Positions 1,917 to 38,975 of a DNA stretch of 64,000 bases are shown one piece after another (position 1 is the first letter of the stretch; every line of letters begins with the position of its first letter). A program made the translations under genes and the position numbers. The notes beneath the pieces were generated by a model. The model saw nothing but the letters and a program-made list of their open reading frames with translations. It made no database searches and was not told where the DNA came from. Location of the stretch: positions 62,001-126,000 of the IMG/VR virus record IMGVR_UViG_3300042564_002819. One strand, given 5' to 3'.

Positions 1917-1930
1917 TTATAAATCCTATA

Positions 1931-5042: not shown

Positions 5043-5050
5043 GTTAATAC

Positions 5051-11980: not shown

Positions 11981-12008
11981 ATTATAACTAATTTATTAAA
12001 AATGTCAA
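11981..12008 (-). promoter_or_regulatory. Sigma70-type promoter TTGACA-N16-TATAAT
   Basis: Perfect consensus hexamers on the minus strand (-35 at 12008-12003, -10 at 11986-11981), followed by SD AAGGA and ATG at 11962. Confidence 0.8.
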
Positions 12009-12850: not shown

Positions 12851-13890
12851 TATCTAAAATCCTCGTATTTGTCATCACGTACAGTATCTAATGTAACACA
12901 GTGTGGGCCACCGCTTAATGTTCTTGCATGTCGCATTTGTACTGGCATTACATCAAAACCACGTGACTCTAATTGTTTGATTAAAGGAATTTGATTTTTT
13001 TCAACTGCAACTAAATTTTCGCTAATACTTAGCACATTCATACTTAACCAAGGACTTGCAGGAGCCCAGTGATCTATAAATGGTGTAGGAATTGGATCTT
13101 CTGCCCAAATTTTATCCCAAGATTTAAAATAGGCAGGAATGTTATTATTGTTAACTCTGCTCGGATTTAACAATACCTTTCCTGGAGCCAAAGGTAATAT
13201 TGTTGTATCGACATGAACATAAGCATATATGTTATCCATAATATGTACATTATATTTTTCACCCAATGTTGATTGTAACCATTGAGATCCTAATTTATTA
13301 CCAGAATTTGAAACAAGATAAAAAATGTCTCGACCGCATTTAATAACGTTGGCTGCGTCGAACGCAATTTCGTATTCGGTTAAAGTAGGTTTAGACAAAT
13401 CTGATCTGTCATAAAGGTCATCTAACAGTTCAGGTTTTGGAGCAGATATCCATCTGCTACCTTTAGAAAAGTATTCCTTAAAAAGTTTTCTATAACCTAA
13501 GGTTTCAAAGTATCTAGATCTTAACGGCATCGGAGTTTCTATTAGCATATCTCCAATTACTAAAACACTATCTCTAGGACAATACATGTAGTATCCATCA
13601 GACGTCCAGTCCGGTGTTGCACATAGCAACCCTAAGTTTTTTATTTCAGGACGATGAACTGTAACATTAACAGATTCTAATTGTTTTTGAAATGCATCTA
13701 AATCTTCTACAGTTTCGTCTATAACTTGTTCAGGGTATTTTCCTGCTGGCAATCCGGAAACTGTATCGTAATTTGCATAGTCAACACAATGAATGTCATG
13801 TTTTTTTGTTTTAGGTATTTGTGCATTTTCTGCCCGACCTAATATTACTTCTTTTAGAGTTCCCCATTCTGTGTTCGAGTTAACTTTCAT
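12850..13890 (-). CDS. Amidinotransferase (glycine / inosamine-phosphate amidinotransferase family)
   Basis: VNSNTEWGTLKEVILG, YCPRD, and catalytic-type FDAAN (Asp), HVDTT (His), GGPHC (Cys). Confidence 0.9.
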   Translation of the reverse strand: MKVNSNTEWGTLKEVILGRAENAQIPKTKKHDIHCVDYANYDTVSGLPAGKYPEQVIDETVEDLDAFQKQLESVNVTVHRPEIKNLGLLCATPDWTSDGYYMYCPRDSVLVIGDMLIETPMPLRSRYFETLGYRKLFKEYFSKGSRWISAPKPELLDDLYDRSDLSKPTLTEYEIAFDAANVIKCGRDIFYLVSNSGNKLGSQWLQSTLGEKYNVHIMDNIYAYVHVDTTILPLAPGKVLLNPSRVNNNNIPAYFKSWDKIWAEDPIPTPFIDHWAPASPWLSMNVLSISENLVAVEKNQIPLIKQLESRGFDVMPVQMRHARTLSGGPHCVTLDTVRDDKYEDFR

Positions 13891-14536
13891 ATATTCTGTA
13901 AGGCCAAAAGACCTTTTGCTCCTTTAAATCTTTATAGGTTAAGTTACTGCCGGTATCTGGATTTTCATCAGGTAGATTTTCTAAAAGTAATAATCCCGAA
14001 GCTGCTTCTTCCGGAGTCATGTACATGTGATAACCAATACATTCATAATCGTCCTCGTCGTGCTTAACGTATTTGTGACGACCATCGTAAATCATTGGTC
14101 TGCACCAATTTATAAAATCATAATCGTCGGTTAAAATGACACCACCTTTTCCTATTTTAAGAGTTTTTCTATGATGGAAACTAACACAGTAATAAGAACC
14201 TTTTACATACATGCCTCTTTTAAACCTAGTAGCACCATCTATAATAGGGGTAGGTTCTAAGTAATATTCTCCACTCCATTCTTTTTCAACAAATTTAATC
14301 CTATTTCCTGCATGTATTATTTGCATAGGTGTACTTGCGTAAGTATGCGAAGGTATGCTAATTATTTGATTTTTTATGCCTAAGTATTTCATACAAAGAA
14401 ACATAGCATTTGAACAACTGTCAACACAAACAGCGTATTTTGATCCTGCATATTCTGCTAATTTGTTTTCAAAAAGTGTTACTGCATCCCAAGGATCGTT
14501 AATTTCATATCCTTTATTTTTCAGTTGGGATATCAT
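13880..14536 (-). CDS. Short DegT/DnrJ/EryC1/StrS-family PLP aminotransferase
   Basis: FENKLAEYAGSKYAVCVDSCSNA, IIDGA, SFHHRKTLKIGKGG. Likely start ATG 14536 after GGGGA (ORF track starts at 14608). Confidence 0.8.
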   Translation of the reverse strand: MISQLKNKGYEINDPWDAVTLFENKLAEYAGSKYAVCVDSCSNAMFLCMKYLGIKNQIISIPSHTYASTPMQIIHAGNRIKFVEKEWSGEYYLEPTPIIDGATRFKRGMYVKGSYYCVSFHHRKTLKIGKGGVILTDDYDFINWCRPMIYDGRHKYVKHDEDDYECIGYHMYMTPEEAASGLLLLENLPDENPDTGSNLTYKDLKEQKVFWPYRIYES

Positions 14537-15254
14537 AAGGTTCCCCTGTTTCTTCGTCAAACCAATAAAGGCTTCTATGAGGCAAGTCTTTTGAATCGTA
14601 TGCTGCATTGCTTACATAAAAGAAAAGTCTAAATGCATTTCTTGTTATTCCTTCAGGGCATGTTAACGGATCTGGAAATCCATGAAATCCTTTTTTATGG
14701 TGTCTCCATAATACTGCTCTGTTGAATAGCGGAGGTACTCTTTGTATTATATTTTTATTTTGAAAATCATTAAACTGTAAGTGGCCGCCCCACTCATCTT
14801 TCCAGTCACTATTTAAATATATAATAAACGAAAGCATACGATGAACTTTCATTGTATCGTTCCAATTAAAGTCAGTATGTATTTTTAACGACGACCCGGT
14901 TTTAATTTTGCTATATCCGGCTCCAACTAAGTAAGGGTCCGGAATTAAATCTTTAATCCCAGTTATTTCTGTAAGCCATTTCATAAATTGTTGACTATGA
15001 AACTGATTTACAAAATTTTCTGCTACAGGTGCAACATCCATGTTTATACATTCTTTCATGCTGCTACCGCGTCTAGTAAATTCTGTCCAATAATAATCTG
15101 GAATATTATTGCATTCTTTTTCTAAATCGTAGGCTAACTCTAGTGGAAGAAAGTCGTCAAGCACAATCATAGGAAATGGAGGAGTGCCTACAAATGTGTC
15201 ATTTAATTTTTTAGTATTGTTAAATTTTGTTCTAACGTGATCGATTAATTTCAT
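14514..15254 (-). CDS. 2OG-Fe(II) oxygenase
   Basis: PFPMIVLDDFL, HTD (HxD), YLN..W..EWGG.L, distal HGF and Arg. Confidence 0.85.
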   Translation of the reverse strand: MKLIDHVRTKFNNTKKLNDTFVGTPPFPMIVLDDFLPLELAYDLEKECNNIPDYYWTEFTRRGSSMKECINMDVAPVAENFVNQFHSQQFMKWLTEITGIKDLIPDPYLVGAGYSKIKTGSSLKIHTDFNWNDTMKVHRMLSFIIYLNSDWKDEWGGHLQFNDFQNKNIIQRVPPLFNRAVLWRHHKKGFHGFPDPLTCPEGITRNAFRLFFYVSNAAYDSKDLPHRSLYWFDEETGEPYDIPTEK

Positions 15255-15267
15255 CTTAGTACTTTCT

Positions 15268-16506
15268 TTAATATGCGTTGTTAAACCAATGGTCAGGTGG
15301 ATTATTTAATAATAAATTATCAAAATCTTTATTAAATTTTTTGTATGTTATACCCGACTTTATATTAGCTAGTCTATTCATAACAACATTATAATTATGA
15401 GTTGTTTCAGGAATAGTTTTGTAAATAATTTTTTTAAATTCGTTGTCGGACATTCTGTTAAGATGATCTACTTGGTTATGAATATGATAAATTCTTTCCC
15501 ACGCTGTATTTAGTGTATCGTATGATTCATCAAAAACATTAGAAAATGTCTTAAACCCATGTTGACGTGTACGAGATAAATGATTTTCTGTTGCATATAC
15601 AAAAAATGGATGTCTATACATCATAGATTTATAAGTTTTTTCTGTACATTGAAAATGAGATGAGATGTCATAGTTGTTTGTTTCTACTAATAAACTCATA
15701 GCAGAATTTATAAATGCATCTTGAAGTGTATTAGAAATAAATTGTTGCCCTGGCGGTATTTCTTTAGACTCATTTTCTAAGAGACACGGCATAGATCTTA
15801 CAATTTCTGTTTTTTCGTCGTTCCAGTATTCGTTTAATTCATTTCCCCAGATAGGATTTTTTGCAGATATATCAGCTATGCTATTTTTAAAAATAGTATC
15901 AATTTCTTCTAAAGAATAGTATTGGCGAGGTTCTATTCTATTATCAGCATATATATTTTTAACATTAAAAAATGAATAATAAGAATTGTTTAATATTCCT
16001 CGGCGTCGTAAATCAACAAATGATACAAGTCTTGTGTTATGCCAATTTCTACTTAAAAATAGAAAACGTTTTTTAAATTTTTTAGTTAAAAATTCATGTA
16101 ATACAATTAGTAAAGGTCCCGGTACTATAGCAAAATTTATGTTTGTTTTTATTATACTTTTTATTAAATCTACATCATGCTCAGAATGAGCCATTACTAG
16201 TATCTTTTCTTCAGAAATTTGATTTATTTCTATCCATTTTTTTAATTTTTCAATAGTGTAAATTGACGTGCCATCAGAGAAATTTACTAAAAATAATGCA
16301 TTTAATTTTTTAAATCTTTCGTCATTAAACAACGAATCATTGGCTACTTTATGTTCTTCTAAATAAACAACCTTTTTTAAAGAACTCGAATCTTTAACAA
16401 ATTTTTTAAAATCGTATATTATTTCTACTTTTTCCATGTCAAAGTGTCGCTGAAACGGAGGAGTTGCCTCCGAAGCTAACACTGTATAGAATAAGTATTC
16501 TTTCAT
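15268..16506 (-). CDS. Hypothetical protein of the EKT-motif family (putative GT10-like glycosyltransferase)
   Basis: VET...CTEKTYK...HPFF...GFKTF...DESYD shared with three other genes in the cluster. Confidence 0.55.
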   Translation of the reverse strand: MKEYLFYTVLASEATPPFQRHFDMEKVEIIYDFKKFVKDSSSLKKVVYLEEHKVANDSLFNDERFKKLNALFLVNFSDGTSIYTIEKLKKWIEINQISEEKILVMAHSEHDVDLIKSIIKTNINFAIVPGPLLIVLHEFLTKKFKKRFLFLSRNWHNTRLVSFVDLRRRGILNNSYYSFFNVKNIYADNRIEPRQYYSLEEIDTIFKNSIADISAKNPIWGNELNEYWNDEKTEIVRSMPCLLENESKEIPPGQQFISNTLQDAFINSAMSLLVETNNYDISSHFQCTEKTYKSMMYRHPFFVYATENHLSRTRQHGFKTFSNVFDESYDTLNTAWERIYHIHNQVDHLNRMSDNEFKKIIYKTIPETTHNYNVVMNRLANIKSGITYKKFNKDFDNLLLNNPPDHWFNNAY

Positions 16507-17678
16507 TTTCTTGTATTTCCATAATGTATTGTATAATAATTATTGCACGGTGCAATATGTCTCCATGGATCTATCACTGTGCAACCTTCGGGCCACAATA
16601 TGTTTTCAACCCATTCTTCCCAATACCCGATTAAATAAACATCTGCGATAGGAAAAATAGTATCTCCTGTGTTTGGATCATAATACTGCACTGTACCACC
16701 GTGCTTTTCAATATAATGTCCTGTTAACATACTCGACGAGCCTATAGTATAAGAAACTCCCGGTTTATAAGCTTTGCCTACAATGCATACATTGTTTCCA
16801 ACAGTTAAACAACGTTTAGCTATATTTTCTGCTTGAATCTCTCTTGCTGTCATAATAGAATCAAAAAGATCATAACCTAAATCAAGTTTTTCAGCAAGAT
16901 ATCTAAGAGCAATGTTGTCTCTAGGATGACAAGCACCTCCGTCGCCCATTCCTGCTTTCATATATCCAGGGCCCATAATCCTGCGTGTTGACTTTGTTAA
17001 TGCATCTGTGACTATATCTACATTGATGTTACCGTTGCGTTCAGCAACATCCTGTATCATATTAACTAACCCTAATTTTGCAGAAATAAAAGTATTATAA
17101 AAAATCTTAATACTTTCTGCTTCATCCCATGTTCCTACTTCATATCTAGGATTATTTTCCATTATAGGTTTATAAAATTCAATTAATTCTTGTGCGTCAG
17201 TTGTTAGACTGCCATCTTTGGTACCGATAATAACCATTTCAGGATTTATCATATCCCATTTTACAGTACCCATTGCTATTAAATACGGATTATATATAAA
17301 TCTTGCATTGTTTATTAAATCTATAAAATGCGTTCTAACAGTTCCTGGTAAAACTGTGCTTATTAACACTACTAGTTGAGATTTGTTAACATATCTATTA
17401 ACTTCTGTTAATACTTCTTTAACTATAGTATAGTCAAAGTCTTTATTAGGTAAATGACTAGTCGGAGTTTCGCCGCCGTATTCAGATTCATGCGGGGTAG
17501 GAACAGCAATAAAAATTATATCACGATCTGCAACTGCTTCTTTAATAGTCGATGCCATATTGAAATTTTTAGGAGATCTTGTTTCAATGTCATATCCTAT
17601 TACATTGTAAAATTCGGCTATTACTTCGGCACAATCTTGTCCGAGCTTGCCACATCCTATCATTGCTACGTTCTTCAT
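16503..17678 (-). CDS. UDP-glucose/GDP-mannose dehydrogenase family protein (atypical)
   Basis: GCGKLG, AVPTP, STVLPGT, KIFYNTF, GGACHPRD (catalytic Cys), GKAYKP. Confidence 0.88.
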   Translation of the reverse strand: MKNVAMIGCGKLGQDCAEVIAEFYNVIGYDIETRSPKNFNMASTIKEAVADRDIIFIAVPTPHESEYGGETPTSHLPNKDFDYTIVKEVLTEVNRYVNKSQLVVLISTVLPGTVRTHFIDLINNARFIYNPYLIAMGTVKWDMINPEMVIIGTKDGSLTTDAQELIEFYKPIMENNPRYEVGTWDEAESIKIFYNTFISAKLGLVNMIQDVAERNGNINVDIVTDALTKSTRRIMGPGYMKAGMGDGGACHPRDNIALRYLAEKLDLGYDLFDSIMTAREIQAENIAKRCLTVGNNVCIVGKAYKPGVSYTIGSSSMLTGHYIEKHGGTVQYYDPNTGDTIFPIADVYLIGYWEEWVENILWPEGCTVIDPWRHIAPCNNYYTIHYGNTRK

Positions 17679-19738
17679 TTTTGTTCCTCGTTTATGTTAG
17701 TGTTTAAAATACAAAAATACTTGTTTAATCTTCCGTGATCAGTAAGTGGTGCCGGTTGAATTTTTTTGAGACAGTTTTTTATTTCACTAGGTATAAAACT
17801 TCTATCGTTAATTATTTTTAGAAAATTTCGATAATTAAATTCTATTTTTGGTTTTAACAAATCATATACTTCTCTGAAGTTAGTTATTTTACTAACTGTT
17901 TCTATATTTTTTACATATAAATGAGCACGCTCATCTATATCAGCTACATCATCGAAGGTATAATCTATTATTTCGTCGTACAAAACAAATCCTAACTTTT
18001 GTAAATACTTATTAAAATGCATCGACGAAAGTGTTACAAACGGTTTTTCTAAAATAATAGGCGTTATAGTTTTTTCACTAATCATTATTGTTTCATGTGA
18101 GCATTCTGTAACAAAATCAAATAAACTTTCGTGGTACTGATGCGGAAGTAAAAACGAGTCAAGTTTTGTATCAAAATCGTCATCAATTTTTTTAACAGTA
18201 TTATCAAAATATTTAAATTCAAAATTAGAATTTTCTTTTAAAAAGTTATGCCAAGTTACAATTCCTTTATCAAATAAATTATATTTCGAAATGTAATCTA
18301 TTGTATAGCATCGATGTAAGTGCCCACGATTATTAAAACACACAAACGGATACAAAAAATTCTTATTGTTTTTTAATTCTTTTATATTACGAGGTTTTAA
18401 TACTGATAAAGTATAATTAAACCAATATGTAGGATAATGTTTTAATTTAAAATTTTTAATGCCAAAACTATTTACTAGATCTGTAAGATATTTGGATTCA
18501 GGTGCACCTGTAATCCAAATAACACTAACATTATAGGAATTTACTACGTCAACAAATTCTTTAGTAACCCAAGGGTGCCATTCGTTTTCTCCATAGATCG
18601 TAACTAATTCAGGTTTTGTATTTTTAATACTTTGAATTAAATTGTCATAGTTAAAGTTATGCCACAAGTCTGCTTCGAGCTCGTAAACTTTGTGTTTATA
18701 GTGATCTATATTAATATTATAAATTTTAAACTTAGAAAAAAACTCTAAAAGTTCTCTGTTATATTCGCTTACTTGAGTTTGTTTTTTAAGATTAATATTA
18801 ACAAATGTTTTTACAATCTTAGGAACATAGTTGTCTGATTTTGTTATATCCAATGCTAGACTTTTATTGTAATCAATTTTCTCTTTTATTTTATTATATA
18901 AGTCATTCAAGTTATTTTTTTGATCAATAACGTTAGTTACATTTACCATTAACTTTTGTATGCGTTTTTCAACATCGGGTTCTGAATCGAACGAATAATC
19001 AAAAATTTCGTCATATAGTTTAAATCCTAGATCTTCAAGATTTTTATGATAGTACTGAGACCCAAGAGTTAATGTAGGTAATCCACATAAGATAGGATTA
19101 GCAGTTTTTTCAGACAAAAGAAATGTATCAGTAGTAGTTTCTGTTGGAATATGCAAAAAAGATTCCAAAAAAGTTTTATTAAAATGATAACTAGAAAAAT
19201 GATTTTCAAACCCGTCTCCGGATAGTAATATCTCCCCTGTATAATATTTCCAATTTTCTTTTAACTCGTTATTAGGAATTTGCTGGTACGATACTATGCC
19301 TTTATCAAGATAGTTATTTTTTGCTAATTCATCTATCCATTGTGTTCTATGAAGTCGAGTACGACCATTAAACGTTAAAAAAGGATTTACAAAATTAAAT
19401 TTGTAATTTTCAATATTATTAAAAAGATCATTATTTTTTTCAAGTTCTTTAGCAGTTTTTAAAAACCAAAACGTCGGCCATGTAATAACTTTTTTTATTA
19501 AATCCTTATTAATTCCGGTCTTAAGTACATTAGAAAAAAGCCATTTTTTGTCTTTTACACAAACTACAACAGTTATTGTAATTAAATTTTCATTGATATA
19601 ATCAACTATTTTTTTTGTTAGATTTAATTCATATTCGTGCATATAAAAAAAATTTATATGTTTTAAATTTTTTATTTTTATATAGTTGTATAATTCGTCA
19701 TCGACAAATTCCCATGCATAAATTGTATTATCGATCAT
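17675..19738 (-). CDS. Two-domain EKT-motif protein (putative glycosyltransferase, internal duplication)
   Basis: Both halves contain PF..FN.R..LHR, DKGIV, SEKT..PI and LGF.LYDEI.DY.FD. Confidence 0.55.
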   Translation of the reverse strand: MIDNTIYAWEFVDDELYNYIKIKNLKHINFFYMHEYELNLTKKIVDYINENLITITVVVCVKDKKWLFSNVLKTGINKDLIKKVITWPTFWFLKTAKELEKNNDLFNNIENYKFNFVNPFLTFNGRTRLHRTQWIDELAKNNYLDKGIVSYQQIPNNELKENWKYYTGEILLSGDGFENHFSSYHFNKTFLESFLHIPTETTTDTFLLSEKTANPILCGLPTLTLGSQYYHKNLEDLGFKLYDEIFDYSFDSEPDVEKRIQKLMVNVTNVIDQKNNLNDLYNKIKEKIDYNKSLALDITKSDNYVPKIVKTFVNINLKKQTQVSEYNRELLEFFSKFKIYNINIDHYKHKVYELEADLWHNFNYDNLIQSIKNTKPELVTIYGENEWHPWVTKEFVDVVNSYNVSVIWITGAPESKYLTDLVNSFGIKNFKLKHYPTYWFNYTLSVLKPRNIKELKNNKNFLYPFVCFNNRGHLHRCYTIDYISKYNLFDKGIVTWHNFLKENSNFEFKYFDNTVKKIDDDFDTKLDSFLLPHQYHESLFDFVTECSHETIMISEKTITPIILEKPFVTLSSMHFNKYLQKLGFVLYDEIIDYTFDDVADIDERAHLYVKNIETVSKITNFREVYDLLKPKIEFNYRNFLKIINDRSFIPSEIKNCLKKIQPAPLTDHGRLNKYFCILNTNINEEQK

Positions 19739-21653
19739 TTACTTTTGTTATCCACGATTTTCCAAAATTTCGCCGTCTAGCAAAAAATATTTGTTCACAA
19801 AACTTTTGTAGACTAATATCTTTATCCTCAGGAAAATCAAATTTGTATCTTACTTTATTTTTTAAAATTTCGTTAGATTGTATGTATCCTATAAAGTCAA
19901 AGTCAAAATTTAAAATCTTTGGATAGTGTGTTGTTTGAGAATAGTCAATAATATAATTTCTTTGCAATTGTATTAATTGATCCGAGAGTTCTTTATCTAA
20001 GTCGAAATTTTCTTTTAAAAATTTATCTATTAAATCAAATACATGTTGACTTTTATTTTCGCTATGAATATTAATTATGGTACTGTGAATCAAATTCCAA
20101 CCATGTATTTCAATTCCTTGAATAGGAACATGATTTATTAAACCGTAATCTGACCAATTTTTATAATGTTTTCTAATTCTATTAATTTCAGAATTAAGCC
20201 AAGGATCTTGTTTTATATAATCAAAAAGCTTTTCATAAAAATCTTCGTACAAAACATTTGAATGCTTATAAAGAAATCTGCTAATATAATTAGTTATACC
20301 GTTGATGTGAAAGGTATTCATAAACCAACTAAAAACTTGAGCATCTAGCATTGTTTCTATTGGTAAATCTTTAGTAGAAATTACAACTTCTACTCCTTCT
20401 TTTAATTCATTTTCATTATATGTTCCAACAAGATAATCGTAAACAATTCTACCTTTTAAATTGTACTCTTCTCTTTGTACCAGATTCATTTCAGCATTTT
20501 CAAGAAGCTGTGCTTGATAGATTGTTATTCCTGTGTGATTTCCTGCTCTATATAGTTTATAAAAGTTGTCTTTCCAAGATTTTAGTGTTTCGCCAGGTAG
20601 GCCTAGAATTAATTCTGTGTACAGAGGAATGTTGCTTTCTTCGCAAAGTTCAAAAACTTCTTCAATTTTGTTTGTATCGAGATTTTTTCTTTTTATGATT
20701 TCAAGAACATTTTCATCCATAGTTTGTACACTTAGATTTAACCCTATCTTAGCACCGCCATCATAGATTAATTTTTTAACAATATCAACTATTTCTTTTT
20801 TTTGATTTTTTGCCCAGCTTATTGTATAAGCTTTTGGATTATTATAGGTTTTTTGAACTTCTATTAATTTGTCGGCTATTAACGAATCTCTGTCTGGAAA
20901 TATTCCAAAATTGGCATCGGTTATACTAACAAAATCGCATCGATTTTCGCCGATCCATTCGAGCTCCTTGTAAACCCTTTCAAGGTCAAACTTTTTAACT
21001 TTGTTGTATGTTAAACTACCCCAGTCACAGAATGTACAAGCATACGGACAGCCTCTATTAGTTTCTAAAGTTGCGTTCCATGTTATCTCAGGATACTTTT
21101 TCATTAAGTTGTCAAATATCCCAATTAAATAAGGACTAGGAATTTCGTCTAATTCATTTATTCTTAAACTCGGCCCTGTGTCAATTGTTTTATTATCAAC
21201 ATTAACTAAGAGTCCTGGTATTTTTAATATTTCTTCTTTGCTGCTAGCTTCTAACAACTTCTTAAAAGATATTTCGCCTTCTTGTTTAAAACAAACGTCA
21301 ATATAAGGATAAATTTCAAAAAAATTAGGATTTTCAATTGACGGTTCAGGCCCGCCGAACAATATCATTATATCAGGATTTATTTTTTTTAGTTCTCTTG
21401 CTAAAACATTATTATAGCTTTTATTCCATATATAAGTGCTAAATCCTACTATAGAAGAATCTTTTAACTGTTCAACTGCTTCTTCTATAGGGTCTCTTCT
21501 CCAAATAAAGTCACCCAAGTAATAATTATTTTTTATACTTTCAAATTGTTGTGCATATGCCCATACAACCGCAGGACTGTATGGAAGATAATATGCATTA
21601 AATTCCTTAGGACCTTGCTGAAAGTTCGGGCTTACAAAACTTACTTTTTTCAT
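19728..21653 (-). CDS. Cobalamin-binding radical SAM protein (class B methyltransferase-like)
   Basis: N-terminal B12-binding-type VGFSTYIWN...LFGGPEP...EGE; ETNRGCPYACTFCDWG; DANFG; ILGLPGET. Confidence 0.88.
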   Translation of the reverse strand: MKKVSFVSPNFQQGPKEFNAYYLPYSPAVVWAYAQQFESIKNNYYLGDFIWRRDPIEEAVEQLKDSSIVGFSTYIWNKSYNNVLARELKKINPDIMILFGGPEPSIENPNFFEIYPYIDVCFKQEGEISFKKLLEASSKEEILKIPGLLVNVDNKTIDTGPSLRINELDEIPSPYLIGIFDNLMKKYPEITWNATLETNRGCPYACTFCDWGSLTYNKVKKFDLERVYKELEWIGENRCDFVSITDANFGIFPDRDSLIADKLIEVQKTYNNPKAYTISWAKNQKKEIVDIVKKLIYDGGAKIGLNLSVQTMDENVLEIIKRKNLDTNKIEEVFELCEESNIPLYTELILGLPGETLKSWKDNFYKLYRAGNHTGITIYQAQLLENAEMNLVQREEYNLKGRIVYDYLVGTYNENELKEGVEVVISTKDLPIETMLDAQVFSWFMNTFHINGITNYISRFLYKHSNVLYEDFYEKLFDYIKQDPWLNSEINRIRKHYKNWSDYGLINHVPIQGIEIHGWNLIHSTIINIHSENKSQHVFDLIDKFLKENFDLDKELSDQLIQLQRNYIIDYSQTTHYPKILNFDFDFIGYIQSNEILKNKVRYKFDFPEDKDISLQKFCEQIFFARRRNFGKSWITKVNDR

Positions 21654-22912
21654 CGTTGTTTATATTTTCCTGAAAATATTTCTTCTACAGTATTAAACAA
21701 TCTTTTGTGAGATTCATATACATAATCATGTTGCATATAATTTAGTTGATTTTGTTTTACCATTTTTAATGATTCTCTAATAAAAGACTCTTTGTGTTTT
21801 CTACTTGTATTTACCCACTTGGTCAACGACTCATGTGCTGCATAAAATCTATCAACTGGACTTTGAATATCATCATACGATTGATCTAACCCAGGAAAGT
21901 CTGTTTGATAGCCCATACTTCTTAATTCTTTTAAAATATTGTATTGTCCTAGAATTATAAACGGATGACCGGCAACAATCGGTTTAAATGTTTTTTCAGT
22001 AATAAACATTCCCGGTTGTTGAAATGCTGTTTCTGTTACAAAACTTAATAAACTATTTTTATAAATAGAATGATTAAAAATTGTTTCGTTGTTAAAGTCT
22101 GGATTTTCTACTGTAAAATCTTTGTCAACAATTAACGGTAAGTTTTTTGTTAACGTATTTTTATATTGATCATCATCTATATTTAACACTGTACTCGGAG
22201 GTACTTGAGTACTATTAGGATCATTACGATAATTACCGCTTACTAATCCATGTTGTGCAAGATTTTTTGTAATCAAATAATACAAATGATCAATTCTATG
22301 ATTTCTAGCTGTTCTATTTAAACTATTAAAGTCTTTTGAGTCCGATGACTTTAAAGCATCAAGTATCAATGGTTGCTTTGGAATGCGATCTTGAAAATAG
22401 AAAAATCCTGTTAAAAAGTATACATGTGCAACACTTTGTTTCTGTCTATTATTAATACACCATTGCTCGTATTGACTTGAGAACCATGAATTATTGTCTA
22501 CTAATATCACGCTGTATCTAGGAAGATGTAAATTTTTTATTGCCTCATGAAGTTCAAAAAATCCATCAACTAATCCGTTAATTGTTTCTCTAATTAAAGG
22601 AAACCCTTCTGACTGATTGTCAATGACTATAAGAACTTTTCCTTTTCTAGCTGCCTGAATAACGTCTAAAGGTATTTCATATAATACATGTCTAGGAGGA
22701 CCGTAGCGTTCTTTTCCAGACCAAGTTTCAGCATAACATCTTACACTAACAAGATATATACCCGGATTATCGTATTCATTTGTTTCTGCAATTTCAAAAC
22801 CTGCTTGCTTAAAAGAATGAAATGCGTTAGTATTGTCAAACGTAAGAGGGTGCGGTCCATCTGATAATTCATGCAAGTTGCTATGATTTAGGTCGTCGAC
22901 ATAGAATCTCAT
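21650..22912 (-). CDS. EKT-motif protein (putative GT10-like glycosyltransferase)
   Basis: FNSLNRTARNHR, VTET...FITEKTFKPI...HPFIILG...DQSYD. Confidence 0.55.
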   Translation of the reverse strand: MRFYVDDLNHSNLHELSDGPHPLTFDNTNAFHSFKQAGFEIAETNEYDNPGIYLVSVRCYAETWSGKERYGPPRHVLYEIPLDVIQAARKGKVLIVIDNQSEGFPLIRETINGLVDGFFELHEAIKNLHLPRYSVILVDNNSWFSSQYEQWCINNRQKQSVAHVYFLTGFFYFQDRIPKQPLILDALKSSDSKDFNSLNRTARNHRIDHLYYLITKNLAQHGLVSGNYRNDPNSTQVPPSTVLNIDDDQYKNTLTKNLPLIVDKDFTVENPDFNNETIFNHSIYKNSLLSFVTETAFQQPGMFITEKTFKPIVAGHPFIILGQYNILKELRSMGYQTDFPGLDQSYDDIQSPVDRFYAAHESLTKWVNTSRKHKESFIRESLKMVKQNQLNYMQHDYVYESHKRLFNTVEEIFSGKYKQR

Positions 22913-23874
22913 TATTTACTTTTTTCTATTTGTTCAAGTATCCACTTGTAAGTTTTTAACAATCCGTTTTCTAAATTATCCGGAGGAGACCAATTTAGTT
23001 GTTCTTTGATTAACTGATTATGACTTGTTCTTCCTGCTACTCCTATAGGACCGTCAACGTTTTTTATTTGTATATTTTTGTTTGTTAGTCTTCCTACTAG
23101 CATTGCTAACTCGTTAATGGAAATCATTCTTTCGCTACCTAAGTTTAAAGGAAGACTGTAATCTCCGTCTACAATTTTTTTAATTCCAACAATACATTCA
23201 TCTATATACAAATAACTACGAGTTTGTGTTCCTGGGCCCCATACTTCGATCTCTCCTGTTTCTGTTTCAGCAACTTTTCTACATATTGCAGCAGGAGACT
23301 TTTCTTTGCCACCAGTCCAAGAACTTTCTGGACCAAAGACATTATGAAATCTTGCTATTCGAACACGTATTCCATAGTTTTTAGCAAATGACAAAAACAA
23401 ACGCTCACTAAACAACTTTTCCCAGCCGTATTCGGAATCAGGATTTGCAGGATATGCACTGTCTTCACTTAAAAGAGGATTGGACGGATCTGCTTGATTA
23501 TGTTCAGGATACATGCAGGCACTGCTAGAATAAAAAATTCTGTTAACTCCCTTTTCTACCATTTCTCTAAGTATATTAAGATTAATTATAGAACTATTAT
23601 ACATAATATTTGCATCGTTGTCGCCTGTAAATATGTATCCAGCACCACCCATATCGGCTGCAAGTTGATAAATTTCATATAAATCGCTTGTAACTATCTT
23701 ACTTACATGTTCTTGATTTCTTAAATCAGCTATATGAAATTCGTCGGCAGTTGTTTGAGAAAATTCAGGATATCTTAAATCTACTCCTATTACATAAAAA
23801 CCTTGACTTTTTAAATCATTGACTAAGTGTACACCGATAAACCCGCCTGCACCGCAGACTAAAACTTTTTTCAT
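22912..23874 (-). CDS. NAD-dependent epimerase, GDP-mannose 3,5-epimerase-like
   Basis: GAGGFIG, LAADMGGAGYI, SSACMYP, YGWEK, RFHNVFGP, GGKEKSPAAICRK and QTRS closely follow the GME signature. Confidence 0.88.
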   Translation of the reverse strand: MKKVLVCGAGGFIGVHLVNDLKSQGFYVIGVDLRYPEFSQTTADEFHIADLRNQEHVSKIVTSDLYEIYQLAADMGGAGYIFTGDNDANIMYNSSIINLNILREMVEKGVNRIFYSSSACMYPEHNQADPSNPLLSEDSAYPANPDSEYGWEKLFSERLFLSFAKNYGIRVRIARFHNVFGPESSWTGGKEKSPAAICRKVAETETGEIEVWGPGTQTRSYLYIDECIVGIKKIVDGDYSLPLNLGSERMISINELAMLVGRLTNKNIQIKNVDGPIGVAGRTSHNQLIKEQLNWSPPDNLENGLLKTYKWILEQIEKSK

Positions 23875-25169
23875 ATATTTGCACCGTACTTTTCTACAAA
23901 GTTATTTAATTCAATAGGTTTTAAATTTGCAAGATTTTTGAAATTATATTCTCTTATTTCTTTCGTTCTTGCATAAAATGTGTGTAATTCCATAGGACTC
24001 CATTTTGAAATAGTTCTACAGAGCGAAATTATCTTTTTCATTCTTTTTTTAGGGTCTGATTCATTATCGTAGCCTTCATCCCAGAAATCCGAAAACGTTT
24101 GAAATCCTAATTTTCTTAAAGATTCTAAAGTTTTTGCTGGACCAACAATAATAAAAGGTTGTTTAAAAATTATAGGTTTAATAGTTTTTTCAGTCATATG
24201 TATGATGTTATTCTCAAAGTTAGTTTCAGAAACTATACTTATATAAGTTTTATCATACCAACTTATTGTGTCCTCAAGTCGATCTTCCATAGGAAATCTT
24301 GAAAAGTCGTGAGTATCTAAAACATAGGGCAACGAATCGTACACTTGGTATAACTCGTCAATCTTTAATCTTATATCGTATTCTGCTACTGCCCGTTGTG
24401 CGTCGTGAATCCAATGTTCCACTGGAACATCTCTTGAAAAACTCATATGTGTACGTTTTAGCAAATCATGCTCAAAAAACTTTAATAATAAAATGTATCT
24501 ATGCAATCTGTGACGTCTATTGAAATTTAGAAATAATTTTTCTTTTTTAACATTTGCATCTGTTCTCTTTGAGAATACAGGATCTTTGCATACCACACGT
24601 TGCTGCAAGACATATAATCCTGCATATTCACAGTTTATTCTTTCTTCGATACAATATTTATTGCAATATTTTTCATAAATTTCTTGTGAATTTGCACAAT
24701 TATTTAAGTATATTACTTTATTCAAAGGTATTTGATTTTCTTTAAAATAATCATGTATACTTTTAAAAGTTGCATTATCAACAAAGCTTTCATATTTGTT
24801 AGAAAGTAAAATAAAACCATTCCTATTTCTTACAGCATCTAAAACAGTTTGGCTTACAGGAGTTGTTTGAAAAACACCCAAGTGACTGTTTAATGTAATT
24901 TCTGTAAAAAACTTTCTAGGAGAAAGTAATATTTCATACATAAATGGAGTGTCTCCAAGACTTTCAACGTCGTACGAAGGAACAAATCTACATTTAACAT
25001 AATCTTTTATTAACATCGAAATCGGATCTTGCTCATCTGTTACAGAATTGCTGTCCCATCTTAAATACGGCAATCGTTTTATTAAATCATACAGGTCCGG
25101 TACCTTGTAGTTATTCAACGGACCTTCTGGTCCTATCCAGTCATATACAAAAACCAGTTCTTTATTCAT
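23871..25169 (-). CDS. EKT-motif protein (putative GT10-like glycosyltransferase)
   Basis: FLNFNRRHRLHR, VSET...MTEKTIKPI..KQPFII.G...GFQTF..FWDEGYD. Probable start ATG 25169 after AGGA (ORF track 25187). Confidence 0.55.
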   Translation of the reverse strand: MNKELVFVYDWIGPEGPLNNYKVPDLYDLIKRLPYLRWDSNSVTDEQDPISMLIKDYVKCRFVPSYDVESLGDTPFMYEILLSPRKFFTEITLNSHLGVFQTTPVSQTVLDAVRNRNGFILLSNKYESFVDNATFKSIHDYFKENQIPLNKVIYLNNCANSQEIYEKYCNKYCIEERINCEYAGLYVLQQRVVCKDPVFSKRTDANVKKEKLFLNFNRRHRLHRYILLLKFFEHDLLKRTHMSFSRDVPVEHWIHDAQRAVAEYDIRLKIDELYQVYDSLPYVLDTHDFSRFPMEDRLEDTISWYDKTYISIVSETNFENNIIHMTEKTIKPIIFKQPFIIVGPAKTLESLRKLGFQTFSDFWDEGYDNESDPKKRMKKIISLCRTISKWSPMELHTFYARTKEIREYNFKNLANLKPIELNNFVEKYGANI

Positions 25170-26004
25170 AGTCATTCCTACAGTCAAGTGCTTTTTTAAA
25201 ATTTAATAATTTTTGATTTGTTGAAAGTCTTTTTTCTAACATAATTAAATTAATCTGTGTTTGAAAGTCAAAATTTGTCATTACTTCGTCGACATATTCT
25301 TCCATTTTTACAATATTTAAATCTAATATTTTTAAAGATACTATTTCTTTAATATACATTAGTGTGTAATTTGTTAATGGGTGATCGTCGTGATAGTGTT
25401 GCATTTTTTTATCATTGTCTACATAGTAACAATTTTTTATTGGCATTTTTTTACTACGAAAAAAAACCGTCATTGTTTTACTATCAATAAAATGATTTTT
25501 ATATAATGAGAGCTTTTTAATTAACGAATTATAAAAATAAGAAAGAGTTGTATCTATAAACAATTTTGAAATTTCGTTAGAATAAACCATACTATCAGGA
25601 GACATAAACATAAAATACCATTTACAACCTGTATTTTCTAATAAATTTATTAAATTAACCATATACGTTAGTGTTTTTATTATTGAAGTTTTATCTGAAA
25701 TTAAAAAATCTAATTTAGCTTTTGTTAACTGTTCAGATGTTAAACTTCCTAAACACACCCAATCTCCATTTTCATTGATGTAATCAGTTCTGTTTGGTTC
25801 TGTCCACTGTATTATTACCGTATCAGTATTTTTTACTTTATTACTGAGTAATACGTTGGTTGCTTTGTGAAATATATAAAAATTTCCACATCCTGGATTT
25901 CCATAATTTTTTGTCACATTGTAACTTTGTGCCACAATGTCTGGCCACATCGGCCACGAATATTGAGCAAAACTGCATCCAAACGTATATAGGTTACCCT
26001 GCAT
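25162..26004 (-). CDS. SGNH-like protein
   Basis: FGCSFAQ, NYGNPGCGN, IQWT..NR.D, late DDHP; same motif layout as 12005..12850. Confidence 0.55.
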   Translation of the reverse strand: MQGNLYTFGCSFAQYSWPMWPDIVAQSYNVTKNYGNPGCGNFYIFHKATNVLLSNKVKNTDTVIIQWTEPNRTDYINENGDWVCLGSLTSEQLTKAKLDFLISDKTSIIKTLTYMVNLINLLENTGCKWYFMFMSPDSMVYSNEISKLFIDTTLSYFYNSLIKKLSLYKNHFIDSKTMTVFFRSKKMPIKNCYYVDNDKKMQHYHDDHPLTNYTLMYIKEIVSLKILDLNIVKMEEYVDEVMTNFDFQTQINLIMLEKRLSTNQKLLNFKKALDCRNDYE

Positions 26005-27370
26005 TGGTAGTAGTATCCTTACATAGATTATAAAAATTTTCCATTTCAGGAAATGTTTCTAAAAAGTTTACATTTCTTCTTCTATCGTACTCTTTAAACC
26101 AGTTATAAAAGTCTTTTCTACCTTCGACAATTTTATTTTCTTCGTATGCTACCGATGCAAAATAGTTTCTAACACGACGAAATCTTTCATATTCTAAATC
26201 AGAGAATTTAGTAGTATCTTTTTCGTCTGTATTGTCTTCTATAAATTTTAATATTTTATCAAAATAAGGAAGAAATTCTTCCTTAGGAAGAATATGCATA
26301 TCATATTGCAACGGTTCTTTTAAATACGGAGTATCAAACCTAATTCTTCTTCTCGACGGATGATGATATTGTTTACGCCATTCTAGTATTTTTTCTAAAA
26401 ACAAAGTAAAACTAGTAACACTTAAAATATTAAAGGTACACATGAAAGTAATATCTGCACCAGTAACGTCTAAGTAGTTTTTCATATTTGATTCCCACAA
26501 ATCGACATCTAATCCGGTTCTCATATACTCAGCACGTTTTCCAAAAGAATCTATACTTGAATAAAGTTTAAACTTTTTTATGGAGTTTGTTTCTAATAGC
26601 TCGTTAACACTGGTTGATAACTTTGTTACTAATCTCGGACTTATACCCAAGTTACTATTTAAATTAAGTTCAAGGTGAGGACGGGGATCTTTTTTCAATC
26701 TCTCAAATAAATTCCATGTGCTTTTATGCATCAACGGTTCGCCACCTGTAATTCTTAAAATATTTAGAGTTTTTGAAAGCTCAGGCCACCATTCCCACCA
26801 TGCTTTAATGTAAGGATTGTTATCTTCTTCCATTGGCTTAAACCAGTCAATGTCTAGTGCATGGTTGTTAACACCTTCGACTTTTCCAAACTTTTTAATT
26901 TCAGCATGATAAGAACTACTTGCCATTGGGTGGCAATATCCACATTTAAAATTGCATTCATTTGAAAATGCAACTTCAACATATTCAGGATTAACGTTAA
27001 AATCCCACGGCTTTGTTAGAATTTCTTCAACTCTCTCAGGCTTATAAATTGATTGGTTTCTAATCATTCTATCTGAGATGTGATCGTTACCAAGAGATTC
27101 TACATTCCAACAGTATTTACAGCCTTCAGGTTTTTCACCAATAAGCATCTTTGCACGTTCTTTTTTCTTTGTTAGAGTGTTGTGCAAAGCACTAGGATTA
27201 TTTTTTATTTCCGACAAAGAAATAGCGTGAGGAGCAGGATGATAACAACTGTGGGTATCACCTGTGTGCAAGTATATTGTTGTATGATGCCATTTAGCTA
27301 AACAAAACGTTGGACTTATTTTGTCCATTTCTGTATTTTGTTGCTTGATTAAGTCTGTTTCTGAAGTCAT
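25994..27370 (-). CDS. Radical SAM protein with N-terminal Twitch domain (CxAKW/HSCYHP subtype)
   Basis: CLAKW...HSCYHP...CKYCW, CNFKCGYC, TGGEP; paralog of 10436..11962. Confidence 0.9.
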   Translation of the reverse strand: MTSETDLIKQQNTEMDKISPTFCLAKWHHTTIYLHTGDTHSCYHPAPHAISLSEIKNNPSALHNTLTKKKERAKMLIGEKPEGCKYCWNVESLGNDHISDRMIRNQSIYKPERVEEILTKPWDFNVNPEYVEVAFSNECNFKCGYCHPMASSSYHAEIKKFGKVEGVNNHALDIDWFKPMEEDNNPYIKAWWEWWPELSKTLNILRITGGEPLMHKSTWNLFERLKKDPRPHLELNLNSNLGISPRLVTKLSTSVNELLETNSIKKFKLYSSIDSFGKRAEYMRTGLDVDLWESNMKNYLDVTGADITFMCTFNILSVTSFTLFLEKILEWRKQYHHPSRRRIRFDTPYLKEPLQYDMHILPKEEFLPYFDKILKFIEDNTDEKDTTKFSDLEYERFRRVRNYFASVAYEENKIVEGRKDFYNWFKEYDRRRNVNFLETFPEMENFYNLCKDTTTNAG

Positions 27371-28299
27371 TGTTCTCTATCTATAAATTGTTGATCGAAT
27401 GTCCTTGCAGGATTTTGATATACTGTTTTAAAAAACTTACTTTGTTCTGCTTCTAGTGGATAAGCCGCAATAGGTAAATCCAACACCGGAATAAGTGCAT
27501 CAGCTAAGTCCTCGCATTTACGGATAATGTTTTCTTCATTGACATTTTTAGTAACAGTATTGTTCCAGTAATCATTAAGCCAGTCAAAGTCTCTAACATT
27601 TACATAATCCCAATCGGATAACATTGTCTTATGTAATCCTTCTCGAGCACCGTAAATAGCCCACATACCGTTTTCTACATCAGCACCTATCATTAACCAA
27701 ATATAAAGTCTGTGTAAATTTTTCCAATGGTTCTTTTTAAAATCTTCTATCGATGGCTTAATGCCGCGGTCGAGCGACATTTTAACGCCTTCGCGAAAAC
27801 CTGCACGCCATGCTTGTTGTGGAGTTGCGTTATTAAAAATTTCACTGTAACAGCTATTCATTTGAATGTATTCTACATCCCAACAAAAATCTACTTGTGC
27901 GTGAGGGTTGTTTGGGTCTGCATTTTCATGAGTTTTCATGTTAAGAACGTATTCTTTTGGCCAGCATTTAAGGCCGCCGTTTCCGTACATAAGACCATTA
28001 ATAGTATTTCGAGCAGTCCAACTAATAACGCACTTTTCTAAATCTTTATTTTCATCAAAGTCAAACTCCTTTGTTAAAAACTCCGATTTAATAGTGTTGT
28101 CGCCGTCAACGGTGATAAATCTATCCGTTTCAGAGAGTTTAGCACATGCCTTATGTGCTGCATCTGAGCCTTTGACTCCGTGAACACGTTTTGCCCATGG
28201 AATTTTTTTGCACAAGTCTGCATAATTTTTTTCTGCATTAGGTTCATCATAACTTAAGTATATAATGTCGTAATCAAGAACTCTAAATTTATTTCCCAT
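27367..28299 (-). CDS. Putative GT-A glycosyltransferase (DGD motif)
   Basis: DIIYLSYDEPNA...HGVKG..AH...FITVDGD...YGNGGLK...AWRAGFRE. Start ATG 28299 after GAGG (ORF track 28347). Confidence 0.65.
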   Translation of the reverse strand: MGNKFRVLDYDIIYLSYDEPNAEKNYADLCKKIPWAKRVHGVKGSDAAHKACAKLSETDRFITVDGDNTIKSEFLTKEFDFDENKDLEKCVISWTARNTINGLMYGNGGLKCWPKEYVLNMKTHENADPNNPHAQVDFCWDVEYIQMNSCYSEIFNNATPQQAWRAGFREGVKMSLDRGIKPSIEDFKKNHWKNLHRLYIWLMIGADVENGMWAIYGAREGLHKTMLSDWDYVNVRDFDWLNDYWNNTVTKNVNEENIIRKCEDLADALIPVLDLPIAAYPLEAEQSKFFKTVYQNPARTFDQQFIDREQ

Positions 28300-28882
28300 T
28301 AATAACCTCGTGATAATATGTTTCAAGTCGTTTAATAGTATATACACTTAATAATCCAACAGTGTGTTCTATTTGATTTTCAAATAAAATTTCATAGTCA
28401 TTGTAAATTAAATCTGTTAAATTAACAATAATGCATCTTTCCAATTGATGCGGATCATTAAATCTAGTAATGCTAAACATTAAGGGTCTGTCTAAAGATA
28501 CTTTTTTTGTTTTTAAGTTTTCTTTTATAGACTCATCTAGTTTAAAAACCCATTTTTTATTTTCAATGTCTTGTACTATAGTTAAGTCTGGCCTAGAACT
28601 ACTCTTATATTCTGGTATTTTATGTACCTGTGTATTAATATCAAAGACAACTTCTTCGTTGTTAAATCTATGCTTTAATATATAGTTCTTTTTTATTGTA
28701 TCAAAGATTACTTGATAAGTGTGAAACTGTTCCTGACCTGTGATTAAATTATAAACTTCGTCAACGTCTACCTCAATATACAATCCTTCGCTGTCGTTAG
28801 AATTTCCTACTGAGAGTAAATTTCCCAAATCGTCAAAATAAACAAATTTTTTGTTTGAAACATATAGATTATCTGTGTTCAC
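28289..28882 (-). CDS. Hypothetical protein
   Basis: 197-aa ORF filling the operon gap; no recognisable motif. Confidence 0.7.
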   Translation of the reverse strand: MNTDNLYVSNKKFVYFDDLGNLLSVGNSNDSEGLYIEVDVDEVYNLITGQEQFHTYQVIFDTIKKNYILKHRFNNEEVVFDINTQVHKIPEYKSSSRPDLTIVQDIENKKWVFKLDESIKENLKTKKVSLDRPLMFSITRFNDPHQLERCIIVNLTDLIYNDYEILFENQIEHTVGLLSVYTIKRLETYYHEVINGK

Positions 28883-32963: not shown

Positions 32964-32971
32964 TATTTATA
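32964..32971 (-). promoter_or_regulatory. T4-like late promoter TATAAATA
   Basis: Exact T4 late consensus overlapping the upstream stop codon, about 25 nt before ATG 32938. Confidence 0.7.
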
Positions 32972-38965: not shown

Positions 38966-38975
38966 TATTTATTTA
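38966..38975 (-). promoter_or_regulatory. Late promoter-like TAAATAAATA
   Basis: Overlaps the stop of the giant gene, about 18 nt upstream of ATG 38948. Confidence 0.5.

Follow-up and report, generated by a model that had tools for sequence, protein, structure and literature searches.

The 64,000-nucleotide stretch of DNA analysed here (hereafter the window; from IMG/VR virus record IMGVR_UViG_3300042564_002819) carries a string of tightly packed genes. Four of these genes code for five homologous domains of an unannotated protein family, EKT, and stand among genes for sugar-nucleotide and radical S-adenosylmethionine (SAM) enzymes (Table 1). Two of the EKT genes directly flank a gene of the GDP-mannose 3,5-epimerase (GME) type. 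Every long open reading frame (ORF) of the window is on the minus strand, the G+C content is ~32%, and the ORFs required no alternative genetic code. The string comprises 27 genes from ~30.9 kb down to 0.5 kb, downstream of the virion genes in the direction of transcription, with the EKT genes in its middle. It has one gap of 216 nucleotides (nt); the other spacings are -95 to +42 nt, the range also seen across 6347-30908, and most neighbours overlap by 1-11 nt. The phage record that was searched is a 121,779-bp IMG/VR virus record in which the window occupies positions 25975-89974, read on the minus strand. Its completeness according to CheckV is 34%, so that the whole genome would be roughly 350 kb.

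Table 1. Genes of the island in the window (window coordinates; lengths in amino acids, aa; HMM, hidden Markov model).
Feature	Coordinates	Strand	Length (aa)	Characteristics
EKT_E	23871..25169	-	432	Predicted GT-B glycosyltransferase of the EKT family; abuts GME on its upstream side, overlapping it by 4 nt
GME-type extended short-chain dehydrogenase/reductase (SDR)	22912..23874	-	320	Between EKT_D and EKT_E
EKT_D	21650..22912	-	420	Directly downstream of GME, 1-nt overlap; family HMM E 6e-89
B12-binding radical SAM protein, KedN5-like C-methyltransferase type	19728..21653	-	641	PF02310 + PF04055; NF033712 E 8e-72, below cut-off
EKT_B+EKT_C	17675..19738	-	687	Tandem domains, ~residues 4-315 and 310-663; two HMM domains
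Divergent nucleoside diphosphate (NDP)-sugar 6-dehydrogenase	16503..17678	-	391	PF03721 + PF00984; TIGR03026 E 1e-43; between EKT_A and EKT_B+EKT_C
EKT_A	15268..16506	-	412	Shorter N-terminal domain; family HMM E 3e-69
DUF6071-like protein	25162..26004	-	280	jackhmmer E 6e-13 and 2e-18; between twitch radical SAM gene and EKT_E
Radical SAM protein with N-terminal twitch/SPASM domain	25994..27370	-	458	NF033640 E 3e-93, above cut-off
Unknown protein	27367..28347	-	326	No Pfam or PHROG match; accompanies twitch radical SAM gene
2-oxoglutarate (2OG)-Fe(II) oxygenase	14514-15254	-		PF13640 E 6e-15
DegT-type aminotransferase piece	13880-14608	-	242	PF01041 E 2e-21, profile positions 24-92 of 360
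Unknown gene	12850-13890	-	346	Overlaps aminotransferase piece; no Pfam match
Second DUF6071-like gene	12005..12850	-		jackhmmer E 2e-17 and 2e-40
Four radical SAM genes and a QueC-like gene	549..6130	-		Pfam; far end of the same gene string

When EKT_E was used as a tblastn query against its own 121.8-kb record, five places were recovered, namely EKT_E itself, EKT_D (E 8e-18), EKT_A (E 3e-10) and two inside EKT_B+EKT_C (E 2e-9 and 3e-9). The family HMM scores all five domains (E 3e-10 to 3e-200), and the signature [ST]EKT occurs exactly five times: as TEKT at 15634-15645 (EKT_A), 21989-22000 (EKT_D) and 24183-24194 (EKT_E), and as SEKT at 18068-18079 and 19103-19114 (EKT_B+EKT_C). In EKT_E numbering, the columns common to all five domains are F213, R224, E315, E327, K328, P338, G355, D364, Y/F367, D368 and R376, and a glutamate of the N-terminal domain, E127, is present in four of the five. 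Pairwise identity among the domains is only 17-33%, for which reason we take them to be old paralogues, related neither by chance nor by recent duplication. The two halves of EKT_B+EKT_C are 33% identical (E 7e-40), EKT_D and EKT_E 26% over 319 aa, and the orthologues of EKT_E in syntenic phage contigs 45-88% identical to it. The N-domain of the EKT_E subfamily bears a Y-D-W-I-G-P-x-G motif (EKT_E residues 8-31, window ~25077-25148), and the ATG start of EKT_E is backed by 432-aa homologues that cover 100% of the protein. An initial annotation, made from the letters of the window, had recognised four genes of one motif family, one of them with two copies. The ORFs are indeed found where it placed them and the five domains are borne out by tblastn and HMM alike. 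Of the motifs it listed, the E(T/C), [ST]EKT, P, GF and D..[YF]D columns are real, but F..(N/S)R....R taken literally has zero protein matches; the actual spacing is F-x3-[NS]-x6-R, as in F L N F N R R H R L H R.

The family is large, unannotated and mostly viral. Searches of Pfam, NCBIfam, PHROGs and the sequences and profiles of the PDB gave no match to EKT proteins apart from one short motif, and the view that the family had gone unrecognised is therefore upheld. The exception is a PDB profile match between the N-terminal Y-D-W-I-G-P and the Y-x-W-x-G-P-N-G repeat of the Aureispira grappling-hook protein GhpA; its summed E of 1e-6 is built from many weak repeats, and we judge it probably a short-motif coincidence. 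A word-index search from EKT_E returned 50 relatives, every one of them "hypothetical". In an exhaustive HMM search with a 42-sequence profile, 14,249 representatives of 50%-identity clusters match at E<=1e-3, 11,954 at E<=1e-10 and 5,257 at E<=1e-30. The nearest Atlas clusters are viral (30/30), the best BFVD matches are uncharacterised proteins of uncultured Caudovirales and one giant-virus metagenome protein, and two peptide patterns alone retrieved >521 confirmed IMG/VR stretches. No member was found by tblastn with three different family queries in 50,697 GenBank phage records. Beyond the seed genomes, bacterial occurrence is rare (~0.4%; one genome among the 200 Bacteroidota and one among the 300 Pseudomonadota that were sampled). 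The 79 viral loci on which the counts below are based, in a sample biased towards the P0047 subfamily, mostly hold two or three domains and up to nine within 10 kb either side, and 26 of the 196 retrieved EKT proteins are two-domain tandems. One weak relative, P0049 (645 aa, E 7e-9), has a precomputed PF03740 (PdxJ) annotation and may be a further fusion.

The AlphaFold2 model of EKT_E, built from 42 sequences, has a predicted local distance difference test (pLDDT) score of 92.1 and a predicted template modelling (pTM) score of 0.88, with strands and helices alternating in both halves. Its structural matches, comprising the 50 best from VIA and 42 from Foldseek (E<=1e-3) and covering residues 1-432, are essentially all of GT-B fold. 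Among full-length matches, T4 beta-glucosyltransferase (BGT, 1c3j) is first with Z 11.4 at a root-mean-square deviation (rmsd) of 6.9 Å (297 aligned residues, 7% identity), followed by human FUT9 (8d0o; Z 10.0, 4.7 Å), Helicobacter pylori FucT (5zoi; Z 9.8, 4.7 Å), T4 alpha-glucosyltransferase (AGT, 1y6f; Z 9.6) and Arabidopsis FUT11 (9s6a; Z 9.4, 4.4 Å). Further matches are PimA, PimB', WaaG, OtsA and POGLUT. A separate model of the C-domain (pLDDT 92.6) matches Arabidopsis FUT11 (Z 9.3, rmsd 3.1 Å over 141 residues), BGT (9.1), FUT9 (9.0) and glycogen synthase (8.8); these top matches, from glycosyltransferase family 10 (GT10) and otherwise, lie within 1 Z unit and must be read as a tie, and the C-domain alone gave no match in Foldseek at E<=1e-3. 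According to these models the EKT proteins have a GT-B fold, as had been proposed; the outcome that would have refuted the proposal, a different fold, is not observed. It is very probable that they are glycosyltransferases of the Leloir type. EKT is, on this assignment, a new family within a known enzyme class and not a new kind of system.

The first place of BGT raises the possibility that the EKT proteins are DNA glycosyltransferases like those of T4, building a multi-sugar chain on hydroxymethylated bases against restriction. The phage is T4-like, EKT and the T4 enzymes BGT and AGT (GT63, GT72) are phage-encoded GT-B proteins alike, and hypermodification of DNA with unusual sugars by GT-B enzymes of phages has been described (bioRxiv 10.1101/2023.12.21.572611). 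However, the Z score of BGT is tied with those of many GT-B enzymes that do not act on DNA, and beyond its 7% identity there is no sequence signal. No thymidylate-synthase-type hydroxymethylase, TET/JBP dioxygenase or C5 methyltransferase (PF00303, PF12851, PF00145) was found in the 121.8-kb record, which is 34% complete, the PF12851 control having matched no control genome; the 2OG oxygenase of the island is of the PF13640 type. Moreover, EKT genes occur in bacterial chromosomes at glycan-type loci, 19 of them in one genome, and EKT domains are fused to GME, dehydrogenase and methyltransferase domains. Modification of DNA appears quite improbable on this evidence.

The relation to GT10 fucosyltransferases was examined with 18 bona fide proteins from bacterial genomes that score above the PF00852 cut-off, and in which R, EN, TEK and P are invariant columns. 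A profile of 97 EKT C-domains aligned to these by hhalign scores 24.7 (E 0.009) over 93 columns across the donor motif, pairing ET with EN, TEKT with TEK and PF-I-x-G with P-I-Y-x-G. This exceeds the controls, which were GT10 reversed (11.4), 60 column shuffles (maximum 17.9) and identically constructed profiles of the three other families compared, GT4 (10.9), GT9 (13.1) and GT11 (16.4). The full-length EKT profile gave E 0.18, and an earlier alignment to six GT10 sequences only was non-significant (E 0.78); deeper profiles improved the score. The two families share, besides the GT-B fold, an invariant Arg upstream that opens the C-domain, an acidic residue closing a strand (EN in GT10; ET or EC in EKT) with T-E-K 10-12 residues on, and P-hydrophobic-G 10-11 residues after that; EKT keeps R224, E315, T/S326-E327-K328 and P338 at a spacing similar to that of GT10, with T or C at the position of the invariant N. 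In contrast to GT10, EKT has ~30 extra residues between the Arg and the ET strand, a tail GF-x-T-F...DESYD...R that is not in the 18 aligned sequences, the Y-D-W-I-G-P motif of its own in the N-domain, and gene neighbours that indicate several donors.

Several results tell against a closer relation. PF00852 matches neither the four window proteins nor 42 family members at E<=1, nor, at E<=10, the phage record translated in six frames; hhalign assigns a probability of no more than 4.5%; and T4 BGT, glycogen synthase and other structures score within 1 Z unit of those of GT10. We do not claim membership of GT10: the PF00852 HMM gives no match, and another residue stands in for the Asn that is invariant there. 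The resemblance that the initial annotation saw is retained, faintly yet specifically, in the donor motif and in the tied-best C-domain match, but does not extend to inclusion in PF00852. A distant GT10-like donor site is likely, judged by alignment and model; true kinship of the two families seems to us nearly balanced, with a slight inclination against it. One could go further and regard the EKT proteins as very divergent GT10 fucosyltransferases that use host GDP-L-fucose, with GME serving another purpose. The above-control donor alignment would fit, as would the GT10 structures having the lowest rmsd among the top matches and the PF00852 clusters being the nearest annotated Atlas neighbours in a protein language-model search, the scores of which are a lead only. 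This is nevertheless improbable: besides the failure of PF00852 and the Thr or Cys in place of the Asn of "EN", the genes for GDP-fucose synthesis, GMD and GFS, were not identified in the island, where the sole SDR is of GME type, and the fusions to GME and NDP-sugar dehydrogenase together with adjacent RmlC-like genes favour several donors. GT10 fucosyltransferases themselves accept GDP-L-galactose, and L-galactosylation has been described by way of promiscuous fucosyltransferases (reviewed in PMC8787198).

The protein encoded between EKT_D and EKT_E is of the GDP-mannose 3,5-epimerase type by sequence. It matches Arabidopsis GME (2c59) over residues 3-320 with a phmmer E of 3e-91 (309 bits), far ahead of the next family (SDR 8rdg, UDP-glucuronic acid decarboxylase; E 4e-23); the general PF01370 profile gives E 1.5e-37, and the top NCBIfam match, GDP-fucose synthase, is far under its cut-off. 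Key residues of GDP-mannose 3,5-epimerase (GM35E, EC 5.1.3.18) are the catalytic triad S143/Y174/K178, the acid-base pair C145/K217, and N203, R243 and R306 (PMC8787198). All eight are identical in the window protein when a two-residue offset of the PDB chain is allowed for, and they fall in the sites SSAC (117-120), YGWEK (149-153), FHN (176-178), GGKEK (188-192), QTRS (217-220) and GVAGR (278-282). The epimerase had been called GME-like from its SSAC Cys and EK Lys, and this assignment is amply supported. In contrast to the plant enzyme, the window protein is without the ~28-residue N-terminal extension.

Coupling of this epimerase to EKT_E recurs outside the window. The order EKT_E - GME - EKT_D - B12 radical SAM is repeated in a 161-kb phage contig (L008), where the EKT_E orthologue is 47% identical. 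Two proteins, P0070 and P0084, are fusions of an EKT_E-type domain with a GME domain 56% identical to that of the window; EKT_E is the window domain closest to their EKT half (31% identity, E 1e-57 to 1e-61), and this domain arrangement is shared by one Atlas cluster with 90 viral members. On an alphaproteobacterial contig of 784 kb, an EKT gene lies ~9 kb from a GME gene (57% identity). Complex prediction for EKT_E and GME gave ipSAE values of 0.00 and 0.01 (mark 0.32), which speak neither for nor against binding.

A second type of epimerase takes the place of GME elsewhere. In two viral loci (L009 and L010) the order is radical SAM genes - DUF6071 - EKT - RmlC-like cupin epimerase (PF00908), followed by SDRs, and the counterpart in the window is twitch radical SAM - DUF6071-like - EKT_E - GME. 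RmlC-like genes are present in 38 of the 79 viral loci, and 14 of these abut an EKT ORF. Since two unrelated types of 3,5-epimerase share the slot beside the transferase, the EKT_E-type subfamily would appear to use 3,5-epimerised, that is L-configured, sugars; we consider this the best argument for such donors. One subfamily is in this way tied functionally to 3,5-epimerases, and we predict, with slightly better than even confidence, that EKT_E uses the product of the neighbouring GME.

The same cannot be said of the family as a whole. Just 2 of the 79 viral loci contain a true GME (>200 bits) close to an EKT gene. A Haliscomenobacter sp. metagenome-assembled genome (MAG) has 19 family matches in several clusters and no GME, so that neither L-galactose nor L-gulose can serve as the general donor. 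Against the overall scheme given below, no GDP-mannose pyrophosphorylase was found in the 34% complete phage record, although the host could supply GDP-mannose. Transfer of L-configured sugars, which the initial annotation had suggested for all EKT proteins, is sustained by the GME fusions and the RmlC-like exchange for proteins of the EKT_E type, but not as a rule for the family; likewise, the expected co-occurrence of GME and EKT is seen in the fusions and in L008 synteny but not in the viral loci at large.

Other sugar-nucleotide enzymes occupy similar positions. The dehydrogenase between EKT_A and EKT_B+EKT_C matches structures of UDP-glucose and GDP-mannose dehydrogenases (E 2e-20 to 2e-15). 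An NDP-sugar dehydrogenase is found in 23-24 of the 79 viral loci, in 20 of 23 cases abutting an EKT ORF, and in the BFVD entry A0A6J5TB28 the dehydrogenase and an EKT domain form one protein. FkbM-type or class I methyltransferase domains are attached to other members of the family. Given this range of partners (dehydrogenase, methyltransferase, GME and RmlC-like), EKT is best described as a general glycan-building family with varied donors, not as an L-sugar family.

The most constant partners of the family are, however, not sugar-nucleotide enzymes but N-twitch radical SAM proteins and DUF6071-like proteins, both of which escaped the initial annotation. In 49 of the 79 viral loci a homologue of the twitch radical SAM protein is encoded no more than 10 kb away from an EKT gene, and DUF6071-like genes are present in 63, typically just upstream of the EKT gene. 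The latter were detected by three-round jackhmmer searches from two Pfam-verified DUF6071 (PF19547) seeds. The link of the two window genes to DUF6071 is provisional, because the Pfam model itself gives no match to either of them even at E<=10. In L009 the slot of the gene next to EKT_E is held by a DUF6071 gene (L009:9256-9999). The second window gene, at 12005-12850, has a faint GDSL/SGNH hydrolase match (E 0.14) that hints at a sugar acyl-esterase or acyl-transferase fold. A similar setting is found in the Haliscomenobacter genome (G001; loci L042, C1:100001-120000, and L043, C3:8001-28000), on one contig of which five EKT genes are interspersed with a carbamoyltransferase gene, a DUF6071 gene (L042 copy at 9565-10335) and four radical SAM genes, of which two clearly encode a SPASM domain at the N-terminus.

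This association could be taken to mean that EKT proteins are not Leloir transferases but binding or scaffold subunits, or catalysts of another class of reaction, that partner the radical SAM enzymes. Both partners are commoner near the family than any sugar-nucleotide enzyme, and the alternation of genes in the bacterial genome is in line with it. The (near-)invariant R224, E315, E327 and K328 are, however, within the stretch that aligns to the GT10 donor motif, the fusions are to sugar-nucleotide enzymes and to FkbM-type or class I methyltransferases, and every structural neighbour is a transferase, all of which makes such a role highly improbable. Known carbohydrate-modifying radical SAM enzymes include dehydrogenases with a twitch domain, for example BtrN, and sugar C-methyltransferases that depend on B12. 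By analogy, the radical SAM enzymes of the island may tailor sugars after their transfer by EKT glycosyltransferases.

Other genes of the island have a more restricted distribution. The B12 radical SAM gene keeps its position in L008, as does EKT_D. The 326-aa protein encoded upstream of the twitch radical SAM gene has homologues in 20 of the 79 viral loci (up to 515 bits), and its Atlas look-alikes are viral hypothetical clusters only, with a weak GT2 lead (0.87). The gene order of 12005..15254 is kept in L008, including the split of the aminotransferase (217 + 352 aa), which makes a sequencing frameshift an unlikely cause. Of the four radical SAM genes that end the string, two (549-1916 and 3627-5042) have an N-terminal SPASM domain; in L009 and L010, five radical SAM genes form a similar run ahead of the EKT gene. 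Among the four is a gene for a QueC-like or NAD-synthase-like ATP pyrophosphatase (2977-3630); the sugar cluster of phage S-SSM7 has "NAD synthetase" genes.

Upstream of the island, window positions 32967-63999 code for tail-fibre, baseplate-wedge, baseplate-hub and other virion proteins according to PHROGs. The baseplate wedge protein shares 34-37% identity with its counterparts in Atu_ph07, SCTP-2, PA5oct and large Escherichia phages, all jumbo myoviruses, and by this protein (36% identity) the source of the window is assigned to an uncultured T4-like jumbo phage of the Atu_ph07 / SCTP-2 / PA5oct group. A single ORF of 4603 aa (38969-52780) between the baseplate wedge and tail-fibre genes presumably codes for a very large protein of the virion or its fibres. 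In the window, sites of the T4 late-promoter consensus TATAAATA are under-represented, with 4 against 14 expected. One of the four (32964-32971, minus strand) precedes the start of gene 32021-32938 by ~26 nt, from which no conclusion is drawn because the motif is rarer than chance window-wide.

The glycan island continues almost without gaps after the tail-fibre genes on the same strand. Among its 29 proteins, encoded between 549 and 32938, no transmembrane-like segment was found and no flippase, polymerase or priming transferase was recognised. From these two features, the missing membrane segments and the position behind the tail-fibre genes, a soluble macromolecule is the most likely acceptor. 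A virion protein is our tentative best guess, and the least certain step of the argument: the location of the genes and the lack of membrane proteins are all that speaks for it, and no collagen-like G-x-y runs or other obvious acceptor motifs were seen in the tail-fibre or other structural proteins. The same enzymology could instead serve the host envelope, as an auxiliary-metabolism cassette that, in the course of infection, remodels lipopolysaccharide (LPS), capsule or another surface polysaccharide. T4-like cyanophages hold GME-type homologues 53-57% identical to that of the window, variously annotated, in sugar clusters; such "LPS-like" clusters of cyanomyoviruses place them beside other glycosyltransferases, and envelope remodelling is assumed for those clusters. 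The clusters of S-SSM7 and SynMITS9220M01 resemble the island in their GME type, NDP-sugar dehydrogenase, 2OG oxygenases and several glycosyltransferases, but differ from it in that their annotated transferases belong to other families; no EKT was found in them by tblastn with the three family queries. The one well-resolved bacterial context, the alphaproteobacterial contig mentioned above, is also a locus of polysaccharide type: it encodes a multi-GT4 protein of 1646 aa, a sulfotransferase and, for synthesis of 3'-phosphoadenosine 5'-phosphosulfate (PAPS), CysNC. Set against this are the lack of membrane-associated functions among the 29 proteins, although the host could supply the membrane steps, and the near gap-free continuation from the tail-fibre genes. 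An envelope acceptor is in our estimation rather unlikely.

Taken together, the observations are consistent with the following scheme of EKT transferases with neighbour-supplied donors that build a multi-sugar glycan. The C-terminal, Rossmann-like domain would bind a nucleotide sugar through R224, E315 and the pair E327/K328 of TEKT, in a donor site that parallels, and is probably a distant relative of, the GDP-fucose site of GT10; E127 is a candidate base for inverting transfer. Each EKT domain would probably use the product of the adjoining sugar-nucleotide enzyme, such that EKT_E, and perhaps EKT_D, may take GDP-L-galactose or GDP-L-gulose from GME, and the dehydrogenase may supply EKT_A and EKT_B/C with an NDP-uronic acid. 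Assembly and tailoring of the glycan would be the joint work of these transferases, the radical SAM enzymes (B12 and twitch), the 2OG oxygenase, the aminotransferase and the DUF6071-like proteins. As a best explanation we lean, by a small degree, towards this chain as a whole, in which donor, acceptor and linkage are putative and the family sits in a wider island of radical SAM and DUF6071 genes. A more ambitious proposal is that EKT, N-twitch radical SAM and DUF6071-like proteins constitute an undescribed, mostly phage-borne and membrane-independent glycan-assembly system, in which locally made rare nucleotide sugars (L-hexoses supplied by GME or RmlC-like epimerases, and uronic acids) provide sugars that are added singly, tailored by radical SAM chemistry and built onto a soluble acceptor, e.g. 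virion proteins. We regard this as speculative and somewhat unlikely in its full extent.

Very few transferases dedicated to L-galactose or L-gulose are known. The natural fusion of GME to a transferase offers a direct handle on L-sugar transferases and a possible biocatalyst for L-sugar glycosides, and the tight association with EKT provides the orphan twitch radical SAM and DUF6071 families with a testable context. With >14,000 cluster representatives at 50% identity, yet absent from Pfam, NCBIfam and PHROGs and from the solved structures, the family represents a sizeable blind spot in the annotation of phages and glycans. If the membrane-independent system exists as outlined, it would provide uncultured aquatic jumbo phages with a hypermodified glycan coat, and if the virion is the acceptor, many uncultured aquatic phages would bear complex glycans of relevance to host recognition and the evasion of defence.

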